DNA of 64,000 bases from Adineta vaga (taxonomy: Eukaryota > Animalia > Rotifera): NCBI GenBank assembly GCA_021613535.1, contig CP075492.1:4774001-4838000 (forward strand), given 5' to 3'. The notes under the pieces are model-generated. The model was not told the origin of the DNA and made no database searches. It saw only the letters and a program-made list of their open reading frames with translations. The translations under genes were made by a program, and so were the position numbers. Below, piece by piece: positions 20,736 to 60,712 of this stretch. The first letter of the stretch is position 1. Each line of letters opens with the position of its first letter.

Positions 20736-22638
20736 ATGGCATCAACAATCGAACCTGAAGGAAATGCAGAGAACTTGTCAGATGAAAATCAACTAGCAAT
20801 TGATCAACAGTTGACACAAGAAAATGATAAAGATGAGTCTTCAACAACAGCAACATCATCAACTCGAACGTCTGGACAAACAGCAATTGGTGCTAAACTT
20901 GTAAAGAAATTAGAAACCTTTGGTATGTATAATTTCTCAATCTATTAATTCATTTCGTAAGTTAACACTTTTTCTAGCTGCAAATTCAAAAGAAAATAAA
21001 CAAACGAATGGTAAAACATCATCATCAACTGCTGCTGCTAATGTTTCGAATTCAAATAATGAATCGGATTTCCGTCGAAATATCAATAAAACTGCTAGTA
21101 TGTGTTCGATGAAATAATCTCTTTGTTGTAGTGATTTCCGTCTTTTCTTCCCCTAGAAAATCTCGTGAAAACTCTAACTGATTCAGATCCTCAAAAGAAT
21201 CTTTTGACGTTAGCAACAAAATTAGCTGAATTTCAAGAACAAAATCGTTCGATTCAGAGTAAAATTCATGAATTAGAAAAGAAATCCGTTGTATTTATGC
21301 GTGAAAGAGATCAAGCATTACTTGAAAATGGAAGAATATCAGCTTCAAAAGGTAAATTAGAAAGTCTTTGTCGAGAACTTCATCAACATAATCAACAAAT
21401 TCGAGTATGTCAACTTTTTAGACATTGAAAATGTTTGTTTTCAACATAGAATCTTATTTTCAGGAAGAAAATATTCAACGACAACAAGAAGATGAAACTA
21501 AACGTCGTGAATTAGCAACAAAATTTCAAGTAACGCGATTCATTTATTTCATTCGTTTATCATTGATGAGAATGTTTTAGACAACCATTGATGAAATTGC
21601 ATCGCAATTATCAAATTATAGCGAGAAATCGACATCGTTACGTGATCAAAATGCTCAATTATCTGAACAATTAGGATCGGTTGTTAAAGATTATGAACTA
21701 CGTGAAAAAGTAAACTTAACGTTCTTATACCTTTACCTTTCGAAATATTATCTTCATCTAGGAAATCGAAGCAACATTGAAGAAAAAAGAATTAGAATTA
21801 CGTTTAAGTGAAACAACTCTCGAACAAAGTCGTGTTTTACTCACTGAACGAACCGATTTGATTAAACAGGAACGACAAGTCGTATGTGACGAACCTTCGT
21901 TTTCGTATATTGTACTTTTTTTCTCGATTTCATTCTAGAGTGAAGCCGAACAATTGCTACTCTATAGAAAATGTCAAGAATTAGCTGCATCAGAATTAAG
22001 TCTTCGTTCACAATTGACTGTTTATGCCGAACGTTATCAAGAATTTGAAAATGCAATTCAACAAAGTAGTCAAATGGTCACGTCATGTCATACGGAAATT
22101 GAAAAGATGGGAAAGAAAATTAAAAAATTAGAAAAAGAACGAAATGAATTTCGTCAACGATGGGAAACAGCAGAAACTAATCAACGAAAAACTAATGAAG
22201 ATGTATGACCAGAGAAAAGATCATTTGATTGAAGAGAAAACTTTGTCTTTCGTAATTTTAGATGAAAGTATTGGAAAAAGAAAAACGACAAGCAGATATT
22301 AAACTTGATAAACTTGATCGATTATGTCGTGCATTACAACAAGAACGATTAGATTTACAAACAACAATTAAAAGTTTAACAAAATCATCAACAAAAGATG
22401 AACCATCCACTCTTTCTAATGGTATTTCGTTTTCATTGTAAAATCTTTCTTAAAAATCTTCTTTTAGTTACTTCATCAATTGAAATCGAAAAAACTGTCA
22501 TTGCTGATGTTCCAAATCCTTCCGAAACATCACCTAATCTCTATGGTTAGGATTCTTTTCTCGTATTGTTCTATATAAAGAATATATTTCTTTCATTTAG
22601 ATAGTGAATTGGGTCGCATTGCTAAAACAGTTGATTAA
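20736..22638 (+). CDS. Taxilin family coiled-coil protein, about 10 exons
   Basis: KGKLESLCRELHQHN; LRSQLTVYAERYQEFE; EIEKMGKKIKKLEKE; KLDRLCRALQQER. Confidence 0.88.
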
Positions 22639-22947
22639 TTTTGTTCTTTCTTTCTTTCTTTTCTCTTTGTTGAAATGATGTTAGTCCCAACATTGGTTCT
22701 TTTCTTTTATCTATTCAATTTAGTGCTGTGTTTTTTTTCTACCAATGTATAACTCTGTTTTCTTTTGTATTTACGTAGTTGTGATACGTTTTCACACTCG
22801 TCTTTCTATACAAATAATAAAGAAGAGCAAGAACAAACATATTGTTATTGGCGGGAATAAATCCATGTAAAAAAAAAGTTTCTCCTCCTGACAACTACTT
22901 CTAAAAGTAAAAAATATCAATACTAAAGATAATGAATATTGTTCATA

Positions 22948-24802
22948 TTAATGTTTTTGTACTATTGAATACATTTTTGGACATTTTTGTCGTAACTCTT
23001 CAATACCTTGACAAATGCCTTCTCGATGTTCTTTACATTTAATGCCATATTCTAAAAGAATTCTATCATCGATCATATTAAGTAACCAATATCCATCAAC
23101 GCCCTTTATTTTAAATACTTCTACGTATGATATATAATCATCACCCAAACTTTTTAACCATTTAGCTACATCATCGGTAGAGCTCACTGTTTTATGCTTA
23201 TAAATACCTAGAAGAAGAAAAAGTCTGTATGATGTTCGTTCTATGTATTGTCATTGAATACTTACGTTGTGGTTGAGACTCCAACTGTTTGATTTCGACT
23301 GATTTCACACGGTATAATTGAGATGAGTCTTCTAAAATAGGAGGTTTCGCAATCGAACCAGTTTCAACAAATGAACTGCCTCGTGATCGAGTGCCTAGAT
23401 CAGTCGGAATGGAGTTTGGATCGTTGCTAACAGAAGAGCGGCGCCGTGTTCTTGCATCATCATCGGGTGCATTTAACGATGGTGTTGTCGCTGGTGCTAA
23501 TTTGTTTGGTGACCATCTTTCGCCTTCGTATGTAATCCATTTACTCAAACATTCAATAAATTTACTCGCATAAACTTGTTCCACCCACTTTTCTGGAAGT
23601 TTTTTATAACCATAATACGCTCCTGCTAGTTGACCATAGATAGCTGCTGTTGTATCTGTATCATCACCTAGATTGATTGCTGCGAGAACACCTTTCTCAA
23701 AAGAGTCTTCATCAGACCAGAATGCCCACAATGCAGCTTCGAGAGCAGCAACAATATAGCCTTTTCCACGAATACCTGCTTCATAACCTTTTTCTTTTTT
23801 ATATGATCCACGTGCAATTGCTTCGATATCAGCATGTAAAGGTTTTGATCCAAACCAAGGCTTATGTTTTTCATAGAAATCTTCTGAAAGTAAATCTTCT
23901 CTTTTCGCACCGTTGACAGCTGCTACGATCAACGCACCATAATAACGACAGGCATCATATGCTTTCATATCACCATGGGTTATTTCTCCACTATGTCCAG
24001 AATATTCAACAGCATACAGAGGCAGTTTGAAAAAGAACAATGGTACTGGAGCAAGTCTCATCAAAGCTCCATTACCAGCAACACCTTCGTCGCTACATTT
24101 GACGTCGAATTGATCGAGAACATCTAGATCGGAGATAAAATCCAATTCATCCGAAGGAATTTGATATTTTGCAGCAAATTTTTTTTGACGTGCTTCGAAT
24201 TCGACAATGGAATGTTTTGTAGCCGAACCAATATCGAAGCATTTTCCTGTGGATGACATATAACCATGTCGAAACCACCATTTATATCGCACCAGTTGAT
24301 CGTAAGGATCATAATCTTTTCGAATTATCAACGAATTAGCAAGACAAAGTGCCATTGAAGTATCATCAGTAAACTAGATTATACATGGAAAATCCTAGAC
24401 CACAACATAACAATTTATACATATTCATACCTGTCCTTTTTTAAGACCCCAAGTACCACCACCTTGTAAGTCAGTTACTGGATTATTTATCATGAATTCA
24501 TGGGGTCGGAATTCAACATGAGCACCAAGAGCATCACCCAAAGCCATTCCAATCATTGAACCATGAATACGATCAAAAGCTTGAGGATTAAATCTGTTAG
24601 GAGGATCTTTCATTTGTTTTTCTAACTCTTCTGGTTTGATAACCGTTCCGTTATCGTTATGCTGCAGATCAAGCCACGGTTTATCTAAGAAAAAGACACA
24701 TATTCTTTTTCATTCTACAACAAATGATCTGCCTAGATACTACCTGTTTGATACTGATGAGACAAATGCTCGTCTGATGTCGTTCTTGCTTGTTGATGCC
24801 AT
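22948..24802 (-). CDS. ADP-ribosylglycohydrolase (ARH/DraG family) with C-terminal SAM domain, multi-exon
   Basis: GMALGDALGAHVEF; GQ|FTDDTSMALCLA via intron 24374-24430; GNGALMRLAP; LGDDTDTTAAIYGQLAGAYYG. Intron 23208-23265 joins in frame to a SAM domain (DDVAKWLKSLG...GVDGYWLL). Start ATG 24802 is tentative. Confidence 0.88.
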
Positions 24803-25387
24803 TTCTACAACATCAACCAATGAAATGAATAACTTTTGTGTTCAAGGTTTTTCATTTTCTTTTACAAAGAAAAAGGTAGACAACTTATCGATTACTTTTT
24901 AACTCATACTTTTCTTGCTAACTACCGTTGTCTATATCTTCTCAAAGTTTGATTTCATCGATCTGTACTTGGAAAAAAATCGTGAGTTATTTTAAGTAAA
25001 ACTAACTTACCAGAGTGTATTTTTTTGAAAAAAAAAATGAAGACTGTGAGTGGTTTATTTGTCTTTCTCCTTTACTCACCTCTACATGAGAAGACTCTGA
25101 AATATGCTGTCGCATTAAAAGGTAGAGAAAAGAAAACCATAAATAGTCTACACAAGACATTGACGCATGTTTAAAGAACAGAAACAAGATGAAATCATCG
25201 TTCTTTTCTTTAACTATTCCGAGAAAAATTATGTTGACTAGGAACGAGATCCGATGATATTCATCGACATCTCAAGGACATAGATGTCACTCCGTACATA
25301 ATAACTCCAGTACTAGTGATATCGTTGGTAAATTACAACAAAGAATCGTACTTGTAACAACTATCTTCAGTATTCATATCGATCGAA

Positions 25388-27957
25388 ATGCTTCAATCAA
25401 AGAAAACATCTGTTTATCCTACAATACATATTCCATTGTATCGTATTTATCTTTTTGTACATTCAATCTTCTCTATTCTTTGATTTCTAGTGAAACTCTT
25501 TCCTTGAAGAACAATGATGAATCGTTCGTTCTTGATCGTCCAACAATCTGCAATGAATGGCATCGTCTTTGGTCTGCATTTGGTTTCAATGATCATCAAT
25601 GGGTATCACGTGCTGCCAAAGTTGAAGAATATACTCGAGTAAGATTCGATTGAAAATCTTATTCTTTTAATTTTCCTTTCTTCCGATTTAGAAATTATTG
25701 GACGATAAGTTATTAACTTATAAAGAACAATTGAACAAACGAGAACAACTTCTTAAACAATCTCTTGATGATTATGAAGATTTACTTGAACGAACTGGTC
25801 TTGAATCTTCGATTGAAGTAACAAACAATAAATTTATTTGATTTTTGATAATAAAAGACTTTCTTTTCTCTGAGTTTAGACTTTATTATTTGAAGAATTA
25901 AAATTAAAAGAACAAGAAATCTATATCGATAGAAAAATGCATGAATTATTAATTCTTGAAGATCAATTGATTCGACAACGAACGGAACTTGAAAATAAAC
26001 AAAAGTATCTCTGTATATTACTTCATACAACTCCTATTGAATACGATGAAAGTTCGTTCTCCTTCATTCTATTCTTTGAAATGTATCATTGAAATAAAAT
26101 ACTTTAGATCATCCTATGTCACTGATACAAATCAATCAAAAACTTCAAGAACATGTCAAAATGCTCAGTGAATTAAAAGTCTGAAACACATTTCCTAGCT
26201 TTTCGTTTCTTTTTAAAGTTCTTTATATTAGGAATTACGTTTAGCTCAAGTATCAACATATTATATTAAATTAAAAGAATATTCTGAACAATTAGAATGG
26301 ACACCACCATCAGCATCATCAACAGTTGAACATCTTCTCCTACAACAATTTGAAGATTGTTTGACTGCAGATTGTCTAAATGAAATTGAAATGACAATGC
26401 ATGAAGTAAGTTTTGACAAGATATTAAAAAAAAACAAATCTATTGTTTGATATCTCATTTAGTTAGAACATCAAATTGAAATTCAGAAAACTCGTTTCTT
26501 TACATTACATAAACAATTGGAACATCTTTATCAACGTTTAGAAAAAGATCCAAATAAAGATTATTGTCTAGCATATAAGAATGGCAGCGAACATATCAAT
26601 GCATTTGTGATTAAACAAGTATGATCAAGCGAGTTTCGCATGTTTATTTCGAGGAGATTATTTTGTTTTTAGCTTGAACATGAAATAGCATGTTGTCGAG
26701 AACAACGAATGAAAAATGGCAAAGAATATTGTCAATCAATTCGACAACAAATTGCTGATCTATTAGACAAAGTGCATTTAAATATTGAAGAACGAACCAC
26801 TCTTGAAAAACTTGATTTCGGTAAAATATTCCATTGTCTTTCGTTCATTTGTACATTACATTTTCTTCTCAATAGAAACGTTATCACCGGAATTACTTGA
26901 TGCATATGATGCAGAATATGAACGTATGTCTCAACTTTATGAAAAACGTAAACCAGTTCTTGATGCGTATCATAAATGGCTTTCATTCTGGAATGAATTC
27001 GTTGTATTTACGGTAAGTTGATTTTAAATTTCGTCTATGTTTCTTTTTAAAGGATAAAATGATTTAGAAAGCATCGACTGATCCTGGACGTTTTCATATT
27101 CGTGGTTATAATGCTGAGATAGAAACACGCCAACGTAAAAAATTTCATCGTGAATTACCAATTATTGAACAAGAACTTTTAAAGATTCTATCAGAATTCA
27201 ATGACTCACCATTTTTATATGACAATGTACCAATTCGACAAAAATTTGATGAAGCACATCAACAAATATCAGCAACTACAATGCCGATGATTACACCAGG
27301 AAGAACACCGGCTACATCACGTTTGCTAGGTCTTACACCAGTTCGAACACAAACACCAGTCACTACTGTATGTTGGCTTTCATTTTTGATCGTTGAGAAT
27401 TGATAATATTCGATTTGGTTTTATATAGCCTCGTCGAGTAGCTATCAAGGAACCGTTTGTACTTGGTACAGCAATAACAAGTACAGCACGGCGTGCAGTA
27501 AAAACACCAGCAACAAATGTAGCTAGAAGATTATTACACAAAGTTACCAGTCACACAGAAACCCCACCAATTCGAGCAAAACCACGACCTCCACCACCAC
27601 CACCACCACTTGCAGGAACATCACCCCCTCATTCTACTGTCAAATTACCTGTTCATGTTCCAGCCTGTACAGATGATCAATCATTGGACTTTTCACTTCT
27701 GCATACAATGAAAAATATCTATGGTCAAACTAAAGTAATGACATCCACTCCTAATTCTTCATTTTTGCCAATGGAAAATCATCATGGTAAAACAGCTCAT
27801 AATCCAATAGGTGAACGTAGGTCTAAGAGACGATCAAAACGAACACCTCTTCCATTACTTGTAAGTTTTATATGTTTAAATTTATTTGTCTATGACAAAG
27901 TAATTTCATTCTTAGATGATTCAAGATACAAATGATGAAACAATCGTATGCCTATAA
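25388..27957 (+). CDS. PRC1: PRC1/MAP65/Ase1-family microtubule bundler, many exons
   Basis: EWHRLWSAFGF at the N-terminus; KASTDPGRFHIRGYNAEIETRQRKKFHRELPIIEQEL resembles the conserved PRC1 DPxRFxxRG motif; TP/Pro-rich basic tail. Divergent, so could be a paralog. Confidence 0.7.
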
Positions 27958-28065
27958 TTCGATTATAACTACTTTTCTCGATTTTATTTTACCTTGTGTA
28001 TTTATTTGAAATAGTAGTACAAAGAGATATTTCTTTTATGTTCAATAAACATGTAATATTATGAT

Positions 28066-28263
28066 AAAAAGTATCAAAAAAGGCCGGAGGCCTTTTTCGC
28101 ATTTTTTTTCTTGCTTTTTGCACTCGGACATGAAGAACCAATGTCGGTGCACAGGTTTTATACTTTTTTTTCGTATTTTCATTGCTCCCAGTACTTGATA
28201 ACACTACAGAGCCAGGATTTTATACTTTTTAAAGTATTTTTACTCCGGAGCGCGCCGCGCTAC
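28066..28263. repeat. Short structured element (hairpins plus internal repeats), possible MITE/transposon remnant
   Basis: AAAAAGGCC-GGA-GGCCTTTTT hairpin at 28077-28097; two TTTTATACTTTTT..GTATTTT copies (about 28156 and 28217); GC-rich AGCGC-GCC-GCGCT at about 28249-28261. Confidence 0.35.
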
Positions 28264-28915
28264 GTTTATTCTTTTCGAACTGAGATATAAATGTTTTAGC
28301 ATTTGATGTTGTGCAATTACGTTTCGTACCGAAATTTACAACGATAATACAGAAACAGAACAAACCATAGACATGTGCTCGTATTATATCTCAAACAATA
28401 CAAAGAAAAACTCTTCGTACAACCCTAATAATTGTTAATGATGTTGTAAAGTAATATCATCTATGCCAAATTCGAAAACGGTACTCATTATGATCTTTAG
28501 AAAGCTCTATCGTGTTCCAATGGAAACATAATCCCAATTATAGATTGCATGTTTTGATACAAAAACGAAAATTATTTTCATACGCAGAGAGAAAAGAAGA
28601 AAAACAAACATTTCTTCTCACATCATTAACTAATATATGAAACGTTGCTATTCATTCATCCCTTTGAAGTCCTAGATATTGACAAAAACATATTTTTTTG
28701 TTAAAAAAAATTACATCCATCTATCGATTTTTGTTTGATCTAACTCAAGATTAACACTAGATTTTTATTCAAGTCTGTAACGAACAATAATATGTAAGAA
28801 AAGAAAGCAAAACGTTGATTAATACCACTCGTCGTAGATCTTCTCAAATAAACAAAGCTAGTAAAAGTCATATGATATTTTATCATATGGTTTTACATCC
28901 TACTATCTATATGAA

Positions 28916-28962
28916 GGGTGTGGGTGAGGGTAAAGCAGTGTCACCTACACCCACAACACTCA
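28916..28962. repeat. Inverted pair of telomere-like GT-rich motifs (member of a dispersed family)
   Basis: GGGTGTGGGTGAGGGT...CACCTACACCCACAACACTCA; related copies near 35710-35758, 50518-50538, 52521-52547 and 55968-55994. Confidence 0.5.
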
Positions 28963-29130
28963 GCTTAAATCGATATTGATGAATTAATAAAACTCATACA
29001 AATATTCAATGAATAAAAACTTTAAAAAAGTATAGTCAAATAAGTTTATTCATATATACATATTATTAATATAAAATCAAATGACAAAATTATAGGTAAA
29101 GATAAAATATGAACTAAAGTCATATGTTTA

Positions 29131-30537
29131 TTAAAATGGATTGGCACTTGAAAATTTTATACCAGTCACAGGACAGACGATCATATCAGAAATTTCTGAT
29201 GTAACTTGATTATTTTCTTGTTCTTCTTGTTCCATCAAGGAAATTGTGTGAAGTAATGTTTTCTTCATTTCATCTGAATTGGTTTGAGCAACACGAGCAC
29301 GTAATTGAGAAATTAAAGATGATGTTGATGAATTATTTGTTACATTTTGACATGCCATTTCTGCTGGTGTTTGAAGTTTTGTACCGAAGATTTTTTCAAT
29401 TGCATCACCACATGCATCACTGACTAAATCTCTTTCTGTTGATAGTGCACAAACCATACTTCGTGCACCGGCTGTTGATGTTCCGAAAATGATTCGTGCT
29501 GCTGCACGGTCACCAACAATACGACCAAGTAAATTGAAACATTCTTCTGTATCACGTGGCATTTCTGATATGATAACATGAGTTTTAAAATGTTCTTCAT
29601 TCATCAATTGTTGAAATAATCTTTGACGAGGATTATCACCACTAACAGGCCAAACAGTTGGAATAACCACATAGGTTTCATTCCATTGATTCATTGCTTC
29701 TAATTCAGCTTTCCATTCTTCTAATTGTGGTTTAGCAGCTATTACTTGAATTTCAGCCGCACGTGCTAAAGCTGCAGTAACTAATGGTAACATTGATTGA
29801 CAATAATTTTGAAAGTCTTTCACACAAATTCTTTTCGTATCTAAGCAATTTTGTATATATTGTCGAGTACAATTTAACATATTTAAATAATGTGTTGCTT
29901 TGTTGCCATCCATTGATTCCGATTCAATTGAAGCTATTGCAAAGTCAATTTTATCAGCCATAATTCTTAATTGACTTTGCCATTTACCAATAGTTGATTG
30001 AAGAAAATAAGGACTAATAATAGTGAAAATTCCTAATGGCATATGTGCTAAATTCTTATAGATTTCATATTCAACTGGTGGTGCTTTTGTTCGTTTCATT
30101 GATCCATCTTTTAAGTACAAAATAAACATTGATCCAACACCAGCATATTGTTTTTCATTATCACTTGCTATTATACACGGATAGATGTTTCGACCAACTT
30201 GATAAATCATATCTGTATATAATTCACGCATTCCAAGATGAATATCACGAGTTGCTAATAATACTTGTTTGGCGCTTGTTCCTCGCCAACCAACAATTAC
30301 TGAAAGATCTTCAATGGTAGGAGCGAAAAAAGATGCCAGCTTTTCCGGATCACCCCATGCTGGAACTGGAATTTCAGTTGGTTGATCACCATCTGTTTTG
30401 GATTTTGAATAATTCACATTTATTTCAATTCGTTTCTTATTATAAGCATCAACGACATTCTCAATTGTTTGTAGATTTTCTTTAGAAGAAACAGACGATT
30501 TCTTGTCTGTTAGCTTGATTCCTTTTAAAATAGTCAT
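29131..30537 (-). CDS. Uncharacterised 468-aa protein, intronless, likely of microbial origin
   Basis: Long clean ORF with TATAAATA at 30586-30593. Helical globular core (YEIYKNLAHMPLGIF, AAEIQV, LLGRIVGDRAAARIIFG) reminiscent of bacterial hypothetical proteins; C-terminal CPVTG. Function not assignable. Confidence 0.75.
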   Translation of the reverse strand: MTILKGIKLTDKKSSVSSKENLQTIENVVDAYNKKRIEINVNYSKSKTDGDQPTEIPVPAWGDPEKLASFFAPTIEDLSVIVGWRGTSAKQVLLATRDIHLGMRELYTDMIYQVGRNIYPCIIASDNEKQYAGVGSMFILYLKDGSMKRTKAPPVEYEIYKNLAHMPLGIFTIISPYFLQSTIGKWQSQLRIMADKIDFAIASIESESMDGNKATHYLNMLNCTRQYIQNCLDTKRICVKDFQNYCQSMLPLVTAALARAAEIQVIAAKPQLEEWKAELEAMNQWNETYVVIPTVWPVSGDNPRQRLFQQLMNEEHFKTHVIISEMPRDTEECFNLLGRIVGDRAAARIIFGTSTAGARSMVCALSTERDLVSDACGDAIEKIFGTKLQTPAEMACQNVTNNSSTSSLISQLRARVAQTNSDEMKKTLLHTISLMEQEEQENNQVTSEISDMIVCPVTGIKFSSANPF

Positions 30538-31106
30538 CAGAAAGATATAAAAATTGAAATGATCGTTTGAAAGGAAAAGTTTATCTATTTATACACTTTC
30601 ATGCATCTAGATCAGACGACGGATAGAAATTAGAACGTTCCTTTGCAAAATTTAACTTTGAGAACATATCTTTTCAAATCCAGGTAACTTTTATTCATAT
30701 ATAAGTAAGAAAAAAAGATTCAAATATGTTTAGCACATGTACATTTAGTCTATTATTTACACACAAACATGTGAAGATAGTAACCAATCGTCATGTTTGA
30801 TTGAAGTGCATATAGTAACAGGAAAGAAAGAACGTCCCATCAGTATATGTATAGATAATAATATGAATAACATTCAAACAAAAATGAAAAATAGAAAAGA
30901 GATAGATCACAATATCCTATCACGCGTAAATTTATCGACTAAAGTTCAAAATTTATAAAATCTAAGCACGCATCACGCATGCAACTTGATGTCTTGCACG
31001 CACTTGACAAACTGTTAATCTTTTATGGATAGACTAAATGACTTTACCTCGATGTATTTTATTCTTTTGTTATATAGTTCATTATATTTTTCGTCTTTAA
31101 ACAATC

Positions 31107-32207
31107 ATGGGATTAAACCAAATGACACCAACTGATAATGATTCTGGAAAACCATCTTTCTTTATTGAACGTACTTTACAAATAGCCAAATTAAATATTG
31201 ACGATGGTGGTCGTCCATTTGCTTGCGTTATAGTTGATCCAGTGACCAATATTATCTTATCTGAAACTGGTAATCACGTGGCACAAACATGTGATCCAAC
31301 AGCACATGCTGAAGTTTTAGGAATTCGATTAGCAGCTGAAGAACGCAAACGACAAAGTAATCATATAACTGTAAAATCACTTTATGGTCTTGATTTCTAC
31401 ATAATGGCTAGTCCTTGTGCAATGTGTTATGGCGCCATGTGTCTTTCTGCACCGCATAGTATCACTTTTATCACTACTCGTGAAGATTATTCCGTTTATT
31501 ATTCTGATCCACGAAAATATTTTTTATTCAATGATTTTTATGAACAAATTTCCAAAGAATTTCATCAACGACGATTACCTACAAAACATTTCTCTGAACC
31601 AAGATTAAAAACGAAAGCATTAGAAATTCTACAACTATGGAAAGACGATCTTAATATGAAACCAACAATCGAACATATAGATTGTCATGATGAAGATTTA
31701 ACAATTCGTTGGTTCAATCGTGTACTTAATTTAGCTCGTGATAATGTGCTACTACACAAGGGTCGTCCATTTGCTTGTGTTATTACTCGTGGTAATGAAT
31801 TAATTGCTGAATCTGCTGATCAAGTCGATCAATTAGGTGATCCTACAGCACATGCTGAAATGCAAGCTATTCGTATTGCAAGTCAAAAACTACATAATGA
31901 ACATATGTTTGATTTACAAATCTATTCATTAGTAATGCCTTCACCAATGTCGCTTGGTGCAATGTATTATTGCAGTCCATCTCAATTAACATTTCTTTTA
32001 CATCCATCGGAATATGAATCAATATATCTTCAACCGGCTGCACCAAAAATACCTAAACTTCTTGATTTTTATGCTGAATATGGTCGAAAAAATGAAAATC
32101 GAATTGTCAAAATGAATCAAATTGACAATGATATTGCAAGAAAACAAGGATTGGAAATTTATCGTCGATGGAAAGAAATTAATATTGATAATCAACAGAA
32201 AAACTAA
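31107..32207 (+). CDS. Tandem two-domain cytidine-deaminase-fold nucleobase deaminase (guanine deaminase GuaD-like), intronless
   Basis: Two repeats of GRPFACVI...DPTAHAE. Domain 1 has SPCAMC (intact Zn ligands); domain 2 has PSPMS. Confidence 0.9.
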   Translation: MGLNQMTPTDNDSGKPSFFIERTLQIAKLNIDDGGRPFACVIVDPVTNIILSETGNHVAQTCDPTAHAEVLGIRLAAEERKRQSNHITVKSLYGLDFYIMASPCAMCYGAMCLSAPHSITFITTREDYSVYYSDPRKYFLFNDFYEQISKEFHQRRLPTKHFSEPRLKTKALEILQLWKDDLNMKPTIEHIDCHDEDLTIRWFNRVLNLARDNVLLHKGRPFACVITRGNELIAESADQVDQLGDPTAHAEMQAIRIASQKLHNEHMFDLQIYSLVMPSPMSLGAMYYCSPSQLTFLLHPSEYESIYLQPAAPKIPKLLDFYAEYGRKNENRIVKMNQIDNDIARKQGLEIYRRWKEINIDNQQKN

Positions 32208-32532
32208 ATAATTTCTCAATTATTAAAACAAAAATCCATAAAATAGTTAACTCGGTTTATAATTATATTGTGTTCTTCTTTTTTTTAATCTAAAATAAAC
32301 GTAGTATCATCTGATGTTTATACAAATACTTGTCGAGTCTATTTATTTCATATCAATATTATGTACGTAGATAAGTATGAACATAAGTTTCTATCATTCA
32401 AAGAAGAAGAAGAAAAAAAGATAAAGATAACGCATTCCTATATAAGATTTACTTTTATGTATGCTATTGTACATTACAGTCTACACTCATTCAAACATTT
32501 CTCCGTTTAGATAATAACAAAAAAACAACAGC

Positions 32533-32988
32533 ATGAATATTTCTAAATTAACACAACAATTATTAAAGGTAAAACGTGACAAATGTTTATCATTTGCTGA
32601 TATTGGTAAAAAAATTGGACGAGATGAAGTTTGGGCTGCTGCTCTATTGTATGGACAAGCAAGTATGACTGATGATGAATGTAAAAAATTAGATCATACT
32701 CTTGGAATTAATCTTACACCTCAAGAAGTACATGAATTAACTCATCCACCATCCAAAGGTACATTAATCAAAGCATTTCCACCAACGGATCCACTGTTAT
32801 ATCGTTTCCATGAAATTCTTGCCGTTTATGGCATACCAATGAAAGAAGTTATTCATGAAAAATTTGGTGATGGAATTATGTCCGCTGTTGATTTTACGAT
32901 TAAAATTGATAAAGATGATACAAATAAAGATGCACCAAGAGTCAATGTTACTATGTCGGGAAAATTTTTACCATATAAAAAATGGTAG
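32533..32988 (+). CDS. cynS: Cyanate hydratase (cyanase), intronless
   Basis: N-terminal HTH (LSFADIGKKIGRDEVWAAALLYGQA), PPTDPLLYRFHE, IHEKFGDGIMSAVDF, GKFLPYKKW. Confidence 0.97.
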   Translation: MNISKLTQQLLKVKRDKCLSFADIGKKIGRDEVWAAALLYGQASMTDDECKKLDHTLGINLTPQEVHELTHPPSKGTLIKAFPPTDPLLYRFHEILAVYGIPMKEVIHEKFGDGIMSAVDFTIKIDKDDTNKDAPRVNVTMSGKFLPYKKW

Positions 32989-33117
32989 TTTTACAATTGA
33001 AAAGACTTTTGTTATTGTTCTTGATTGATAAATAGAATTCGAATTAAAATAAAAATTAACGAAAGAAAACATGAAGATGATGAAATGATAAAACCATCAA
33101 AGAAATAAATCGAATGG

Positions 33118-35114
33118 TTATTTTTTGTCCATTGCCATAGTTTCTCGCTCAATAATCGATATAATTAAAGCATTAAGAATGAGAATAAGGTCGTCGCAAA
33201 GGCTATTCACATAACTAAAAATGTGATTGCCAGAACTAACCGCTGACCAAGCACAAACAGCGCCTGAAAGAACTAAACCTATGCCAAGTGTTGCTACAGA
33301 AAATGCGATCGACGCAAATCTCGATACAGTTACTGTTGCTGGTGTGGCTACACGAATAACATCGGCACCGAACGAACCAGCAACAGCTGCCGTCTGTCCG
33401 GCTATTGTTCCTATAGTTCGTACACTTACATCAGAATCAATTTTCGTCTCTGTCTTTACACAATCTTTGAATACCGATGTCTTTAAATGACTACCATCAT
33501 CGATAGTAAGATTACAGTCAGTTATGTATTGAAGAAAAAGCTTGTCTATACCATATGCATCTTCAATGCTGTTCCTCGATAAATAACGTGGTAGTTGATC
33601 ACCAAAAGGAATAATCGCTGCAAAACCGGCCGCAATCTTATATTTCAATACATTTAATACATAGCCACGACGAAAACATGTATTGATTACACGCGTAACA
33701 GCTAGTGAAATTATCGAGTGGATACGACTATGCGAAGGTTTGAATGCTAATTTACTCAATTCGTTCAACAATTCATTAAAATCAAATGAATTTGTTTCCA
33801 ATAACATCTCTGCATCTGTACTTGCCGGTTCATAGTCAGTTGCCGTTAAAAATATATGTCGTGATTTGACTGGATTATCATTTCTTATTTGCTGCATAAT
33901 ATATTCATGGTGTTGAGTGTGCTGTTCGACAGAGCTACGACCAAAATGTTTACCGACTTTTTCGCGGAATTTTTTCAAATAGCAGATATCTATTTTAGAT
34001 CGTACTAGAAGACATTTTCGCTTCATAATCTGTTCAATAAAATCGATCCAACCTTCTTGCTCAGGTCGAAGCTGATCGTCAAATACTAAAATATAGATAT
34101 CACAATTGGATTTTCGAATTTCATCAAGATAGTTTCCTGCTTCGATTTGATTACTGATTGTTGGTTTGTCTTTATCAAGACCTTGAATATCGACCAGTGT
34201 AGCCGGTATTTTTATCTCTGGATTTGATTGATAAAGAAAAGGATCTTTACGATTAAATTCTAATGGAAAATAAGTACTTTTAGTACTACGAACTGATGTT
34301 GCAAATTGTTCATTCAGAGACTTCACGCCAAGTAAACGATTTAGGAGAGTACTTTTGCCTGCACTTGTATAACCAATCACTCCAATCTTAGTACGTGGTC
34401 CAACTTCGGTATTCGACCATTGATTAGTGAGATCTTGTTCAATTGCTTCAACTAAACCGAAAATCTTAGGTCGAAAATCATCTGCACTACCTTGATAGCA
34501 TAACCATTCTTTCATTCTTCCATTTTACGAAAAAAATGACGAAATTCTGTATTTGATTTTTCAATAAATAATTGCTCGCAAATACGAACATACTGTGAAC
34601 CAATATCGCCATCATCAATCGAAGACAATGATATTGTTCTTCTATAAGCATCTTTACTCACAGTAATACTTATATTTGGACGATTTAGTGACCATTTCAC
34701 TATTTCTGACAGTTTTTTGGTCATTTGTTTTGCTTTCTCGATTGTATCTCGCATTGCTGTCGTACTATAACATTCATGAGTCAAAATCAGATTTTCTAAA
34801 TGATGTTGTCGACATTGAATATCGAATATCAGATCATTATAATCACACTCCATCAAGAGTAAATTCTGTGTACGCTCAATACCATATTTATTCAGAGCCT
34901 CATTCCACAATTTTCTCGTAAACTCCTTGTCTTCAACTGGTACTTGTTTAGGCAAGTATTTGTGTAAGCAATACATACATTTGAAAGGATGGTCTTTACC
35001 GTTATAAATTTGTATGTCCTTTACACATTGATAACAAAAGTATTGTTGGCATTTCATATTAATACATTTACATGGTATACAGTTTTTAATAATGCCAAAT
35101 GATTTTAGACACAT
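33118..35114 (-). CDS. Cys-rich (RING-like) N-terminus + IRG/IIGP-like P-loop GTPase; probably one gene split by a 1-nt frameshift near 34515
   Basis: ORF 34512-35114 has C..C...C.C...CQQYFCYQC...CMYC. ORF 33118-34515 has G1 GYTSAGKS, G3 DIQG, G4 RSKID and C-terminal hydrophobic helices (AAGFAAIIPFGD; LGIGLVLSGAVCAW). The two ORFs overlap at ATGA. Confidence 0.7.
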
Positions 35115-57083: not shown

Positions 57084-57721
57084 ATTCGTTTCTTTTGTGC
57101 TATCTAAAATGAGACACGTCAATTTCTGATTTTTTCCAGAGAAAAAATGATCAAAATGTAACACATCGAGTAATGTCTTTGAAAATATTGCTATGAGGTA
57201 TATTTCAAACAGCCGAAAGTATCTGACTGATTTAAATTCATACCAGAATGTAATGATATTTGGAAATAATCACTGAGAGCGAGTGTCTTTGTACTTCTGC
57301 AGCACTACTCATCAATATTAAAAAACTCGACTGTTTTTGAAGTCGTACGTCTCTCTTTTTCTCCGACTAACAATGGCATATTGTTCATTAATGTTCTCAT
57401 TCTTTATATATAGATATTTAAATACGTAGAAGAATCTTAGACCAGCTATTAAAATTTGAAATAATATACTTAAAAAGAAAATGACGAACATTTTTTTCTT
57501 AAAAAATAAGAATACTGAGAAAATAAAGTCTCTTTCCGTCTACATCTACAGCAGACTATTATGACAGTTCCGGGAAGCGTCTAGAAGAAAAGAAAAATAG
57601 TAGTCTATTTTTTTCTTCAGACTATTTTTTGTTTGGGAAAAAATGAATATTATTGAAGCGATACTTTTGTATGTAAATTTATATGCATATTAGTAGATAA
57701 AAGACAAAAAAAACTAAAATT

Positions 57722-60712
57722 TTATTTCGTTTGTTTTAAAATACCGATCTTATCATAAATATCTCCAATAATTAAATATGTACGTGCTACAGGTGGATAA
57801 TCTGATTGATAAACTTCAATTTGTTTATAAAGTAATTTTTCAAAATATTGCAATGCTTGAGAATAATCTCGTTTTTCCAAAGAAATATAAGCAAGGATCG
57901 TATAAATATCTTCTGTTGATCGATTTTTATTTGAATTTTTGAGTAAATTTTGAAAATAGATTACATCTTGATTAAGATGTCGTTTATTAAATCGAGAATC
58001 ATTTTCAAGTGCTTGAATCTTATTCTCCGGTTTTTCTTCTAATACATTTGATTTCTTAGGTTTTATTTGAAAACTATTTGAATATGTTTCAAAATAATCT
58101 TTCTTCAAATAAATATTTCCAATCATAATATAAGTAATTTTAATTGGTGGAGATTCAATTGATTGTGTTTTCAATTGACAATCAAGTAATCGATGAAGAT
58201 AAACTAATGATTTTTCAAATTGATTTTCTTGTGAATGAATTGTAGCAATTGCTTTATATGTATTTTCTAATGATGGATCATCGGTTGATTTTCTTTCTAA
58301 TTCACTATTCAATAATTGCATAAAATAATGTAATGATTTAGAAAGATTCTGTTTTTCAAAACTAATATTTGCTAAGATATAAAACGTATTGGATAGTAGA
58401 GGATGTGTTTTAGGATAAGTTTCAAGTTGTTTTTGAAGTAAATCTTGAAAATAATTTAATGATTGATCTAAATGACGTTTTTCAAAATGAATATTTTCTG
58501 TTATTTGAAATTTCTCGTTCGATTTAGTCTTTTCAATTGTTTGATAATATAATATTGTTTTATCAAATTGAGATTTTTCTAAATAAAGTTCACCGATTAA
58601 TTTATAAACTTGATCAATAACAATTTGATTAAATGGTTTTTTATTTAAATGACAAGCAATTAAACGATTATAATAAACTAACGATTGATTAATAACTTCT
58701 TTTTTATGATAAATCTTGCCGATAATTTCATAAAGATCAATTAAAGATTCATCTTCATGTAATTTCGTTTCTAATTCATTATCAAGAGATTTCATATAGA
58801 AATTTAATGCTTGATTTAAATCTTTTTCATTTGATTGAACATTATATTTATCGAAATAGAATTCGCCGAGAATTTTATAAGTCGAACTTAATGATGAATG
58901 ACCCGGTTTACTTCTTTCTAATTCTCCATCAAGTAATTTATGGAAATAAATGGATGCTTGATTAAAATCTTGTTTTTTCCAATAAACACGTCCAATAATT
59001 GTATAAGTATCCAGAACTGATGAATGATGAGATGATAATGTTTTCAATTGATTGTCAAGTAATTTTTTATAGAAACTAAGTGCTTTATCGAAATCACCGA
59101 CTTTCATATATATATCACCGAAATTCTTATACGATTGTGCGAAATCAGGATGATTACTTGGTAAAGTTTCGCTTTGTAATTTATGTGCTTTTTCAATATA
59201 TTCCAAAGCTTTTTGTTGATCACCTATTTGAGAGTACATTAAACCAATTTCAGCGTATGTATAACCAAGATCTGGATGATTTGGTGAAAGTTCTTTGATT
59301 TGTGTTTCTAAAGCTTTATCAAACATTTTCGATGCTTCTTGTTTTTTATTCATTGAAACATAAACTTTTCCTAAATCGATATACGTTTTCGTAATTGATA
59401 CAATATCTGTTTTCGATAGATTTTGAAGTGATTTTTCTAAATATTCTAATGCGACTTGATAATTTTTCATTTGAAAATGAATTTGAGATAAACCAGAATA
59501 AGTTAAAGATCGATTATTATCGTTTAGTTGTAATGCTTTATCAAAACATTCAAATGCATTTGAATACTTTTCTTGTGTACAATAAACTAATCCTAAATCA
59601 TTATAACATTGTGAAAGAAGTTTATGAACATCTGCTGATGAACTTTTCAATAAATAATTTAATGCTTGATTGATATTGTCTACCGATAAATTGAATTTCG
59701 CTTGTTTTTCATTCGCTTTCGCAAGACCATGATAACAATAAGCAAGTTCAATATCAGTTTTTGCTAAATTTTGTTTTAGAATTTTTTCGAAATGTTTTTG
59801 TGCTTCATCGTATTTAAGCATGTCAATGAAATGATAACCAATAGCGATGGATTGATTTTGTCCTTTCGATTGATTATTCAATGAAGCTGTAAATTTCTTC
59901 ATATCTGGATCATCTTCGGAACATAATGTAAAATTTGCCATCCAAAGTTTTTTTTGTTCATCATAATAAAGATTATCTATGCGAAAAACACAGGCGAGCA
60001 TAAAAAGAATTTCTTCTTCTTCGGAAAAAGCACTTAAATGTCTAATGTCAGCATATGGTTTAGATTTCGCTTTTAAATTAACCTTTATTTCTAATAGAAT
60101 CGATGTTAATGTATCATTAGGTGGTGGTCGACTGGTTGCAAATTCAAGAGCTTTTTTTCGATTTGTACTTGTAGATAAAAATGAATTCATTGAAATTAAT
60201 TGTCCTATACCAGATTTCAAACGATTAACTTCATCTTTACTTATAAATTGTCCACGATAAACTTTAATCGATGATGTTTTTTGTTGTTTAACAAATAATT
60301 TATGTTGTTCGGATAATTGTTTATTTAAATCTCTTACAAATGAATCAAATGGATTAACATCATCAATATTTTGTGTTCGTAAAGCTTTATTTAAAATCTT
60401 GTAAACACAACTTTCTCTTGTATACCAATGAATGGCTTTTTTCGGATCATATTTTGTATCGAATTCACTCATTACTTTCTTATCATCGACATCATCTGGT
60501 TCAAAATAACTTGTAAGTGTTAATTCATCCGATGATGGCGGATTTTGTTCATTCAATATTTGTTGAAGTAAGGCTTGATAAAGAATGAATTCACCATTTA
60601 ATGATTTATGCATACTTTGATCATCTTTTGCTGAATAAACATTGGAGCCCATATTATCAACACGATCACTTTGCTTCTCGGAAGTATGTTTTCGTCGCAC
60701 AGTTCGAGTCAT
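57722..60712 (-). CDS. ADP-ribosyltransferase (R-S-E type) + long TPR array, intronless
   Basis: AIHWYTRE, VYRGQ, FLSTS, EEEEILF, followed by many TPRs (HPDLGYTYAEIG, HPDFAQSYKNFG). Confidence 0.9.
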   Translation of the reverse strand: MTRTVRRKHTSEKQSDRVDNMGSNVYSAKDDQSMHKSLNGEFILYQALLQQILNEQNPPSSDELTLTSYFEPDDVDDKKVMSEFDTKYDPKKAIHWYTRESCVYKILNKALRTQNIDDVNPFDSFVRDLNKQLSEQHKLFVKQQKTSSIKVYRGQFISKDEVNRLKSGIGQLISMNSFLSTSTNRKKALEFATSRPPPNDTLTSILLEIKVNLKAKSKPYADIRHLSAFSEEEEILFMLACVFRIDNLYYDEQKKLWMANFTLCSEDDPDMKKFTASLNNQSKGQNQSIAIGYHFIDMLKYDEAQKHFEKILKQNLAKTDIELAYCYHGLAKANEKQAKFNLSVDNINQALNYLLKSSSADVHKLLSQCYNDLGLVYCTQEKYSNAFECFDKALQLNDNNRSLTYSGLSQIHFQMKNYQVALEYLEKSLQNLSKTDIVSITKTYIDLGKVYVSMNKKQEASKMFDKALETQIKELSPNHPDLGYTYAEIGLMYSQIGDQQKALEYIEKAHKLQSETLPSNHPDFAQSYKNFGDIYMKVGDFDKALSFYKKLLDNQLKTLSSHHSSVLDTYTIIGRVYWKKQDFNQASIYFHKLLDGELERSKPGHSSLSSTYKILGEFYFDKYNVQSNEKDLNQALNFYMKSLDNELETKLHEDESLIDLYEIIGKIYHKKEVINQSLVYYNRLIACHLNKKPFNQIVIDQVYKLIGELYLEKSQFDKTILYYQTIEKTKSNEKFQITENIHFEKRHLDQSLNYFQDLLQKQLETYPKTHPLLSNTFYILANISFEKQNLSKSLHYFMQLLNSELERKSTDDPSLENTYKAIATIHSQENQFEKSLVYLHRLLDCQLKTQSIESPPIKITYIMIGNIYLKKDYFETYSNSFQIKPKKSNVLEEKPENKIQALENDSRFNKRHLNQDVIYFQNLLKNSNKNRSTEDIYTILAYISLEKRDYSQALQYFEKLLYKQIEVYQSDYPPVARTYLIIGDIYDKIGILKQTK

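Follow-up and report, generated by a model that had tools for sequence, protein, structure and literature searches.

Three adjacent genes in the genome of the bdelloid rotifer Adineta vaga, encoding an uncharacterised protein, a deaminase with two domains and a cyanase, raise the question of whether an animal carries a metabolic gene cluster of its own or merely genes that have come to lie side by side. A sequence-only reading of the analysed window, a 64,000-nucleotide stretch of contig CP075492.1, had proposed a nitrogen-salvage or detoxification cluster in which the uncharacterised protein (here X1, of the X family) would be the missing, possibly cyanate-releasing, step. Our analysis upheld one part of this proposal, since in other organisms X is fused to deaminases of this kind and shares operons with other heterocycle-attacking enzymes, but not the membership of the cyanase, against which stand the synteny with Adineta ricciae and the lack of a cyanase at the loci examined elsewhere.

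Layout, transcription and history of the locus

The three genes were confirmed as adjacent, intact and intronless ORFs encoding X1, a tandem deaminase and a cyanase, with positions and spacers exactly as first described. In window coordinates the features are:

28325-32532, no strand: block unmatched on the collinear contig of A. ricciae, holding X1, the deaminase and their spacers
29131-30537, minus strand: X1, a 468-aa ORF of an uncharacterised family
30538-31106, no strand: divergent spacer of 569 bp between the head-to-head X1 and deaminase genes, a candidate shared promoter region
31107-32207, plus strand: tandem CDA-fold deaminase, a 366-aa ORF
31107-31661, plus strand: deaminase domain 1 (residues 1-185), predicted catalytic CDA fold
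31662-32207, plus strand: deaminase domain 2 (residues 186-366), GuaD-like CDA fold
32208-32532, no strand: spacer of 325 bp between deaminase and cyanase
32533-32988, plus strand: cyanase CynS, a 151-aa ORF
33118-34515, minus strand: flanking GTPase of the IIGP/MMR_HSR1 type (Pfam match), part of the ancestral synteny block and outside the module

Transcription was assessed on contigs from four probable RNA runs of two studies, which carry no expression levels. Positions 29104-30517, 31055-32300 and 32499-33100 were each covered separately; depth was zero at 30592-31014, inside the X1/deaminase spacer, and almost nil at 32284-32424 between deaminase and cyanase, an interval that no contig bridged, and no joints were seen. 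Assuming that these contigs do derive from RNA, gene-by-gene cover, empty spacers and missing joints fit three separate intronless transcripts. The TATA-like box claimed for each gene is present as a hexamer but uninformative as evidence, because such hexamers are expected by chance in spacers of 24-28% G+C (28.5% for the X1/deaminase spacer and 24% for the deaminase/cyanase spacer).

Comparison with A. ricciae separated the cyanase from its two neighbours. The collinear A. ricciae contig L022 carries a cyanase that is 88% identical and lies between the same flanking genes, the GTPase counterpart being fragmentary (L022 10516-11364). By blastn, window positions 27500-28324 correspond to L022 6319-7173 and positions 32533-33050 to L022 10001-10518, with nothing matching in between, and neither X nor the deaminase gave a tblastn match on L022 even at E ≤ 10. 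In a related rotifer the deaminase is found at another location, where neither X nor a cyanase lies less than 10 kb away. The expected three-gene linkage across bdelloids was thus not found: A. ricciae has the cyanase only, the related rotifer has its deaminase elsewhere, and the paralogues are unlinked. The block was either inserted in A. vaga or lost in A. ricciae, and in the latter case the three-gene arrangement could be old. A foreign origin of X1, the deaminase and the cyanase is plausible.

The tandem deaminase and the cyanase

The description of the second gene as a double deaminase held, as Pfam places two PF00383 stretches in the 366-aa protein. In domain 1 (PF00383 at residues 18-121) the zinc site, His67-Ala-Glu69 with Pro-Cys104-Ala-Met-Cys107, is invariant in six orthologues, and among solved structures TadA and the NE0047-type deaminase 2g84 (residues 22-128) come closest. 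Identity as TadA was rejected, since the NCBIfam TadA model NF008113 gave 72.2 bits where its cut-off demands 150. The best solved match of domain 2 is the Bacillus subtilis guanine deaminase 1tiy/1wkq (residues 202-297); this domain keeps HAE at 249-251 but has PSPMS at 278-282 instead of Pro-Cys-x-x-Cys. As none of the six orthologues retains either zinc cysteine (one carries a PTPMS variant), the enzyme would be a built-in pseudo-dimer, with domain 2 presumed from its sequence to be a non-catalytic pseudo-subunit.

B. subtilis GuaD (1wkq/1tiy) and Nitrosomonas NE0047 (2g84) resemble both domains in fold and signature region. However, they are single-domain homodimers of ~160-195 aa, whereas the A. 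vaga deaminase has two domains in one chain, the second with both zinc cysteines changed to Ser. We therefore view the protein as a probable intramolecular pseudo-dimer of the GuaD/NE0047 guanine-deaminase type, in which domain 1 would supply the zinc site and the catalytic glutamate, while domain 2 would act as the structural partner subunit and replace the homodimerisation of GuaD-type enzymes. Judging by its family, the enzyme would release ammonia by hydrolysing the exocyclic amino group off guanine or a comparable amino-heterocycle. Its closest solved structures are those of guanine and guanosine deaminases, and guanine or ammeline are candidate substrates. The tRNA adenosine deaminase ADAT2/ADAT3 (Tad2/Tad3) is a heterodimer of a catalytic CDA subunit and a dead paralogous subunit, and is thus similar in principle, with one catalytic and one dead CDA unit. 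In contrast to the fused A. vaga enzyme, whose nearest relatives are free-base deaminases, its subunits are separate polypeptides acting on tRNA, and its dead subunit has kept the zinc ligands and lost the catalytic Glu, whereas domain 2 has kept the Glu and lost the cysteines. A metagenome scan for deaminase loci returned one 2-kb orthologue contig and otherwise distant single-domain deaminases, and no new synteny information.

The cyanase is canonical, with a full-length match to TIGR00673 (177.5 bits against the equivalog cut-off of 113.3) and a PF02560 match of 7.9e-32 (109 bits). In an alignment with E. coli CynS (1dw9), Arg91, Glu94 and Ser117 fall on Arg96, Glu99 and Ser122 of the E. 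coli enzyme; the cyanase is probably a working gene. Unlike E. coli cynTSX, it belongs to an animal, is monocistronic and has no adjoining carbonic anhydrase or CynX. Bdelloids carry two diverged cyanase paralogues, and the 100.8-Mb, 6-contig assembly that was screened for paralogues holds only these two genes, the second of which adjoins a GPCR and is unlinked to X and deaminase. Our literature search on bdelloid cyanase found nothing relevant.

The X family and its partners

X1 has no match in Pfam or NCBIfam. A profile search nevertheless defined a family of 941 representative clusters, with members in bacteria, in diatoms and other protists, and in bdelloid rotifers. The conserved core spans approximately residues 80-385 of X1 and is extended by a rotifer-specific N-terminus and a helical C-terminus. 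An alignment of 30 family sequences contained 20 invariant positions, all of them present in X1, and 39 nearly invariant ones; many are polar, including Tyr107, Lys161, His165, Gln264, Arg339, Asp343 and Arg344. SNPs in X1 were synonymous in 11 cases and non-synonymous in 4.

Structure prediction (AF2 model, pLDDT 82) followed by Foldseek, which had been suggested as a check, yielded a single relative of the whole core, Legionella pneumophila lpg1979 (PDB 4jx2). No other solved structure covers the entire X core; 4jx2 does so with a VIA Z of 12.7-13.2 (254-255 residues, positions 86-372 of the model) and a Foldseek E of 7e-4 (probability 1.0). It superposes clearly above background, but with an identity of 11-13% and an rmsd of 6.7-7.7 Å. 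The next structures (Z ≤ 10.6) match the helical insertion of X only, a large four-helix bundle that dominates the structural matches. At the sequence level, the family profile missed 4jx2 among PDB sequences even at E ≤ 10; its sole match there, 1gak, was judged meaningless. Listed as a 'putative secreted protein', lpg1979 is itself uncharacterised, and we found no paper on lpg1979 or 4JX2. In the ESM Atlas, a feature search with X returned only unnamed clusters and a shape search one unnamed cluster (TM 0.41/0.51); weak echoes of ASKHA-type proteins (BcrAD_BadFG, AnmK) in the shape search were not trusted.

The partners of X in other organisms were more informative. Several family members with extra length are fusions, with a CDA domain before X in P0289 and P0307 and after it in P0342, and with an amidohydrolase in P0288, P0298, P0359 and P0391; P0289 and P0288 are each encoded by one uninterrupted ORF on the respective contig. 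The fused CDA domains are GuaD-like and 37-39% identical to domain 1 of the A. vaga deaminase (39% for P0342), although two of the three have degenerate motifs (HSE with PCPMS in P0289, HAD in P0307). The fused amidohydrolase is CodA/AtzC-like (E 1e-39 to 1e-37). X is also the last gene of a Rhizobiales operon, following genes for an SBP, a D-hydantoinase, an SDR, a GlcG-like protein, an ABC ATPase and a permease. The operon enzyme matches D-hydantoinase/dihydropyrimidinase (PDB 1nfg, E 1e-119), and the arrangement is conserved in Ochrobactrum and Agrobacterium and, as far as a truncated contig reaches, in Azorhizobium. Two of three related contigs, all of a single metagenome, have a xanthine/uracil permease (Xan_ur_permease) directly before X. 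A 482-aa gene downstream of X on metagenome contigs looks BNR/propeller-like; it had no Pfam or PDB match and gave no functional clue.

These contexts resemble hydantoin-utilisation and pyrimidine-catabolism operons, AtzC and CodA in sharing the same partner enzymes and transporters of small nitrogen compounds. To our knowledge, no X family protein belongs to the described hydantoin, reductive pyrimidine or s-triazine pathways, and we found no relevant literature on X-type fusions. The proposed examination of bacterial neighbourhoods thus turned up deaminase-class fusions and a hydantoinase operon, but no cyanase, nor was a cyanase near X or deaminase in any of the ~25 other loci examined. A CDA deaminase lay beside X in none of eight named bacterial loci. 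The X gene of Tritonibacter is solitary, with a tRNA synthetase or a LysR regulator as its neighbour. In a sample of 401 genomes of the class to which the Ochrobactrum genome belongs, eight had family-profile matches, seven of them distant. Around six of these distant alphaproteobacterial relatives, targeted tblastn revealed no partner that recurred.

Within rotifers, the X paralogue of the A. vaga genome is unlinked to deaminase and cyanase and adjoins an asparagine synthase. In a quick IQ-TREE tree with SH-aLRT support only, X1 is sister to X2 of A. ricciae, and X2 is likewise adjoined by asparagine synthase and not by a deaminase. This suggests that the X1-deaminase adjacency arose secondarily, and that X is evidently able to function without this deaminase. 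A model of the complex between the deaminase and X residues 60-400 scored 0.00 without alignments or controls and speaks neither for nor against binding.

Readings of the locus

Because the same protein types are fused in other organisms, and X lies in operons with a hydantoinase and next to a nucleobase permease, X1 and the deaminase are plausibly functional partners with an amidine or another heterocyclic nitrogen compound as their target. We favour, with somewhat better than even confidence, a locus of two layers in which this pair lies beside an older cyanase. The older layer would be a bacterial-type cyanase that already lay between MAP65-like and GTPase genes before A. vaga and A. ricciae diverged. 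The 4.2-kb block, found in the A. vaga arrangement only, would be the younger one, with X1 and the deaminase diverging from the 569-bp spacer as the functional unit of the locus. X appears repeatedly fused or operon-linked to enzymes that use metal-activated water against cyclic amidines and ureides, namely GuaD-like CDA deaminases, CodA/AtzC-like amidohydrolases and D-hydantoinase/dihydropyrimidinase, and X1 may therefore share its heterocycle with the deaminase and act in the step immediately preceding or following it. Most likely it would be an enzyme whose substrate is the oxo (ureide-type) product; a substrate-binding or regulatory subunit is less likely. That the cyanase adjoins the pair most likely just reflects the place in which the block ended up.

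It could instead be that three unrelated acquired genes lie together purely by chance, the fusions elsewhere reflecting promiscuity of deaminase domains. The lack of conserved linkage in A. ricciae and the related rotifer, the different partner of X2, and the solitary Tritonibacter gene and partnerless alphaproteobacterial relatives would agree with this. Nevertheless, we regard it as unlikely, though deserving serious consideration, since the fusion partners of X are nucleobase-type deaminases with two unrelated folds, joined to it in three separate architectures, and since X also occurs in a conserved hydantoinase operon and next to a nucleobase permease. Moreover, the 100.8-Mb genome has only three CDA-like places, so that X1 would come within 1 kb of one by chance with a probability of ~1e-4, making adjacency to exactly this class very improbable.

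We give less credence to the three genes being one co-regulated nitrogen-salvage or detoxification pathway, in which X would produce or expose a cyanate-yielding or carbamoyl intermediate, the deaminase would remove an amino group, and the cyanase would turn cyanate into ammonia and CO2. The genes are tightly packed and all apparently transcribed (probable RNA contigs), the block lies 325 bp from one of only two cyanases in 100.8 Mb, which is unlikely a priori, and the hydantoinase partner of X yields N-carbamoyl compounds, making a carbamoyl/cyanate link chemically conceivable. Against this, the A. ricciae cyanase occupies the same place without X or deaminase, the deaminase of the related rotifer has neither cyanase nor X within 10 kb, the second cyanase has a GPCR as its neighbour and the X paralogue an asparagine synthase, none of the ~25 other X or deaminase loci has a cyanase, and no contig joins deaminase to cyanase. 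We are also not aware of any route that leads from guanine-type deamination to cyanate. X as the cyanate-releasing step is unsupported: A. ricciae has the cyanase at the same position but not X, and no cyanase lay near X at the other loci searched.

Less probable again is a salvage cluster of three steps that A. vaga recently assembled by gene relocation, with X as an unrecognised enzyme that breaks down cyclic amidines or ureides of a purine, pyrimidine, hydantoin or triazine-like kind. Here the deaminase would remove the amino group, X would open or cleave the ureide to carbamoyl or cyanate, and the resident cyanase would convert this to ammonia and CO2; if true, it would represent a de novo metabolic gene cluster in an animal and give a function to a family of ~940 clusters. 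Least probable of all is that X is a non-enzymatic accessory domain (ligand-sensing, scaffolding or ammonia-handling) serving several amide/amidine enzymes, for although X partners both ammonia-releasing (deaminases, hydantoinases) and ammonia-consuming enzymes (asparagine and NAD synthases), the X-fused CDA domains are partly degenerate and the four-helix bundle dominates the structural matches, its 20 invariant and 39 near-invariant residues, many of them polar, look like an active site, a pattern that a binding site would share.

For bdelloid genomes rich in horizontally acquired genes, the synteny cautions that tight packing of plausibly related enzymes does not by itself make a pathway. 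The tandem deaminase, whose second domain consistently lacks the zinc cysteines, would illustrate particularly cleanly how the guanine-deaminase branch can have a pseudo-dimer within one chain. For the X family, with ~940 representative clusters, no Pfam model and no literature that we could find, the fusions and operons tie X to enzymes that deaminate or open N-heterocycles, which gives a short list of testable substrates, and the rotifer locus provides a natural X/deaminase pair to express together.

Gene content and transcription of the locus

The ORF listing of the window bears out the three ORFs that had been read directly from the sequence as a divergent pair followed by a third gene:

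29131-30537, minus strand: 468-aa ORF, protein X (X1 where it is told apart from its rotifer paralogue, X2)
31107-32207, plus strand: 366-aa ORF, deaminase
32533-32988, plus strand: 151-aa ORF, cyanase

The spacers measure 569 bp between X and the deaminase and 325 bp between the deaminase and the cyanase; the TATA-like hexamers pointed out earlier are present, but carry no information in spacers of only 24-28% G+C. Both the cyanase and the deaminase fold belong to known kinds. The Pfam search identified two PF00383 stretches in the deaminase, and the cyanase reached 177.5 bits with the equivalog model TIGR00673 (cut-off 113.3), with the counterparts of E. coli Arg96, Glu99, and Ser122 kept in the alignment, while X gave zero matches in Pfam and NCBIfam.

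In four sequencing runs from two studies, contigs covered 29104-30517, 31055-32300, and 32499-33100, with no contig depth at 30592-31014, near-zero depth at 32284-32424, and no joints in the contigs over the three genes. That these runs are RNA is a guess, with which the restriction of cover to gene bodies agrees, and the probable RNA data fit three separate intronless transcripts. Variants in the run contigs were mostly synonymous in X (11 synonymous, 4 non-synonymous) and the cyanase (3 and 1), and numbered 7 and 6 in the deaminase, where four of the six non-synonymous ones lie at residues 162-195, near the junction of the two domains. Separately, high-depth contigs of the runs labelled X1 and X5 match the cyanase over 30 nt alone (window 32836-32865), diverge from there, and probably represent the transcript of a paralogous cyanase.

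The tandem deaminase and the X family

Domain 1 of the deaminase (residues 1-185) carries the motifs His67-Ala-Glu69 and Pro-Cys104-Ala-Met-Cys107, and domain 2 (residues 186-366) keeps His-Ala-Glu but has Pro-Ser-Pro-Met-Ser in place of both zinc cysteines. The closest solved relatives of domain 1 are TadA and the NE0047-type deaminase 2g84, and that of domain 2 is the guanine deaminase of Bacillus subtilis (1tiy/1wkq). Identity as TadA itself was ruled out, the score on the equivalog model being far under the cut-off. Five full-length orthologues (374-406 aa, 63-66% identity) show the same motif pattern, indicating that domain 2 is conserved without its zinc cysteines and is not decaying; the mean column identity of the six-sequence alignment was 73%. 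From these motifs we read the protein as a putative fused pseudo-dimer with a single active site. Three distinct tandem-deaminase copies in metagenome ERZ26165376 (loci L019-L021, ~43% G+C; 63-65% identical to the window deaminase) are apparently homoeologous copies in one related rotifer.

A word-indexed search returned 34 relatives of X, at 56% identity in Adineta ricciae, 40-46% among metagenome proteins, and about 30-38% among diatom/MMETSP transcripts, and a family profile run against 1.84 billion representatives matched 941 clusters at E<=1e-3, 113 of them at E<=1e-30. In the family alignment, 20 columns are invariant and 39 nearly so, and many of these are polar. Legionella lpg1979 (4jx2) was the only solved structure that matched the entire core of the AlphaFold model of X (pLDDT 82; Foldseek E 7e-4, probability 1.0; VIA Z 12.7-13.2 over 254-255 residues), the remaining structure matches being restricted to a helical insertion at about residues 152-268. 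lpg1979 shares the core fold but is itself uncharacterised, and we found no literature on it; comparison of the family profile with PDB sequences gave no sequence-level link from X to any solved structure.

Several family members are longer than the core and fuse X to a second enzyme domain.

Fusion proteins of the X family
P0289 (533 aa) and P0307 (573 aa; at protein level): CDA deaminase domain, then X
P0342 (at protein level): X, then CDA domain (HAE and PCPMC both intact)
P0288 (810 aa), P0359, P0298, and P0391: X, then amidohydrolase

In the DNA, P0289 and P0288 are each one uninterrupted ORF on their own contig, that of P0288 being eukaryotic, with Ku, kinesin, and MOSC-domain (molybdenum-cofactor-sulfurase-type) genes. 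The fused CDA domains most resemble the guanine deaminase of B. subtilis and are 37-39% identical to domain 1 of the window protein, and the amidohydrolase part is closest to cytosine deaminase and AtzC, the N-isopropylammelide isopropylaminohydrolase (E 1e-39 to 1e-37). Since the four amidohydrolase fusions form one lineage (56-70% mutual identity) and the CDA fusions occur in both domain orders, the X fusions represent three or more distinct architectures.

The bacterial gene neighbourhoods agree with the fusions. A conserved operon of Ochrobactrum and Agrobacterium ends with X and also encodes an NMT1-type binding protein, a D-hydantoinase/dihydropyrimidinase (1nfg, E 1e-119), an SDR, a GlcG/HbpS-like protein, and components of an ABC transporter. 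A truncated Azorhizobium contig likewise has hydantoinase, SDR, and GlcG-like genes before X. On three related contigs of one metagenome, a GFO/IDH/MocA oxidoreductase lies just upstream of X in all three and a xanthine/uracil permease immediately before X in two. In Archangium, X is grouped with genes for an NAD-synthase-like protein, an asparagine synthase, and an AMP-binding enzyme, and in Tritonibacter X is solitary. What these partners share is chemistry, either hydrolytic or ATP-dependent, directed at the nitrogen of amidines, amides, and ureides, mostly in heterocycles.

Synteny and the history of the three genes

The A. ricciae contig collinear with the window (L022) carries taxilin, ADP-ribosylglycohydrolase, and a MAP65-like gene (window 21046-28324), then a cyanase 88% identical to that of the window, then remnants of the GTPase and the 200-aa ORF. 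Nucleotide similarity ends at 28324 and returns at 32533, and neither X nor the deaminase had a tblastn match on L022 even at E<=10; no protein named as A. ricciae was among the deaminase matches. On three ~43% G+C contigs of one metagenome, no X or cyanase lies within 10 kb of the deaminase orthologues. One of these orthologues has, 5 kb away, a GH59 gene with 74% identity to an A. vaga gene on contig C6 and 69% to one on C1, so the organism is a related rotifer with its deaminase in another neighbourhood. The expectation that the three genes would stay linked across bdelloids thus fails in both comparisons, and the gene order shows the cyanase as the probable earlier occupant of the locus, before the X1-deaminase block.

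Beyond the cyanase, window 33118-35114 (minus strand) holds an intact 465-aa IIGP/MMR_HSR1-type GTPase ORF with a 4-nt overlap with the end of the upstream 200-aa ORF, which is cysteine-rich and without Pfam match; the A. ricciae GTPase counterpart is down to three fragments. Collinearity is lost past the 200-aa ORF and regained at 57721-60697 (a TPR/ADP-ribosyltransferase gene), leaving ~22 kb (about 35200-57700, compared with L022 12000-16700) without counterpart on L022.

The 100.8-Mb assembly searched for paralogues has six contigs, the window occupying positions 4774001-4838000 of the 20.35-Mb contig C3. The deaminase is single-copy. A second cyanase (C3:6139785-6140240; locus L015, 4786-5241) is 66% identical and has a GPCR nearby; it has relatives in A. 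steineri, Rotaria, and Didymodactylos, indicating that bdelloids carry two old cyanase lineages. The closest non-rotifer matches were proteins of 146-148 aa encoded on Mb-sized contigs, one named Fischerella.

The only other X copy (C3:13977137-13977961; locus L016, 4653-5465, minus strand) is a pseudogene in three pieces and different frames, with about 89 conserved-core codons missing, and is the orthologue of the intact A. ricciae X2 (P0002, 78% identical). Directly downstream of both lies an asparagine synthase gene, with GATase and Asn_synthase parts in A. vaga, and A. ricciae carries a tandem duplication of the pair (CAJNOJ010000164.1; L017, 10001-21317). The asparagine synthase near X in the myxobacterial Archangium (L026) is 39-40% identical to the rotifer one, which hints that the rotifer pair derives from a bacterial operon. 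In a quick tree, X1 and X2 were sisters (SH-aLRT 100) within a clade (support 95) that also held the CDA-X fusions, the permease-linked metagenome proteins, and a protist clade. X1 is thus a rotifer paralogue and, since X2 stands beside asparagine synthase, has a secondary place beside the deaminase; this adjacency appears not to be ancestral. A. vaga retained X1 and lost X2; A. ricciae retained X2, and X1 was found neither at the syntenic locus nor among its annotated proteins.

Probable function of the X1-deaminase pair and place of the cyanase

The adjacency of X1 and the deaminase brings together the very two protein types known as fusions from other organisms, and with just three CDA-like places in the genome the probability of its arising by chance is ~1e-4. 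On these two grounds we accept a functional link between X1 and the deaminase as likely, counting in that judgement the case in which the cyanase also takes part. The cluster proposed in the sequence-only reading is thus supported for X and the deaminase; the membership of the cyanase is not. That all three genes form one pathway gains from the a priori improbability of a cyanase beside this pair, but the idea arose after the fact, when many nitrogen-metabolism genes would have been equally suggestive as neighbours, and the cyanase was probably in place first and has no independent support of the fusion type. We regard a three-gene pathway as unlikely.

To our knowledge, and as far as these searches reached, a fused zinc-less pseudo-dimer, a link of the X family to deaminases and cyclic amidohydrolases, and an animal with an X-deaminase pair have not been described. 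In the functional link that we favour, domain 1 would deaminate guanine or a similar amino-heterocycle, with domain 2 providing the partner-subunit surface. X, most likely an enzyme for the oxo or ureide product, would work on the same ring system, a step removed from the deaminase.
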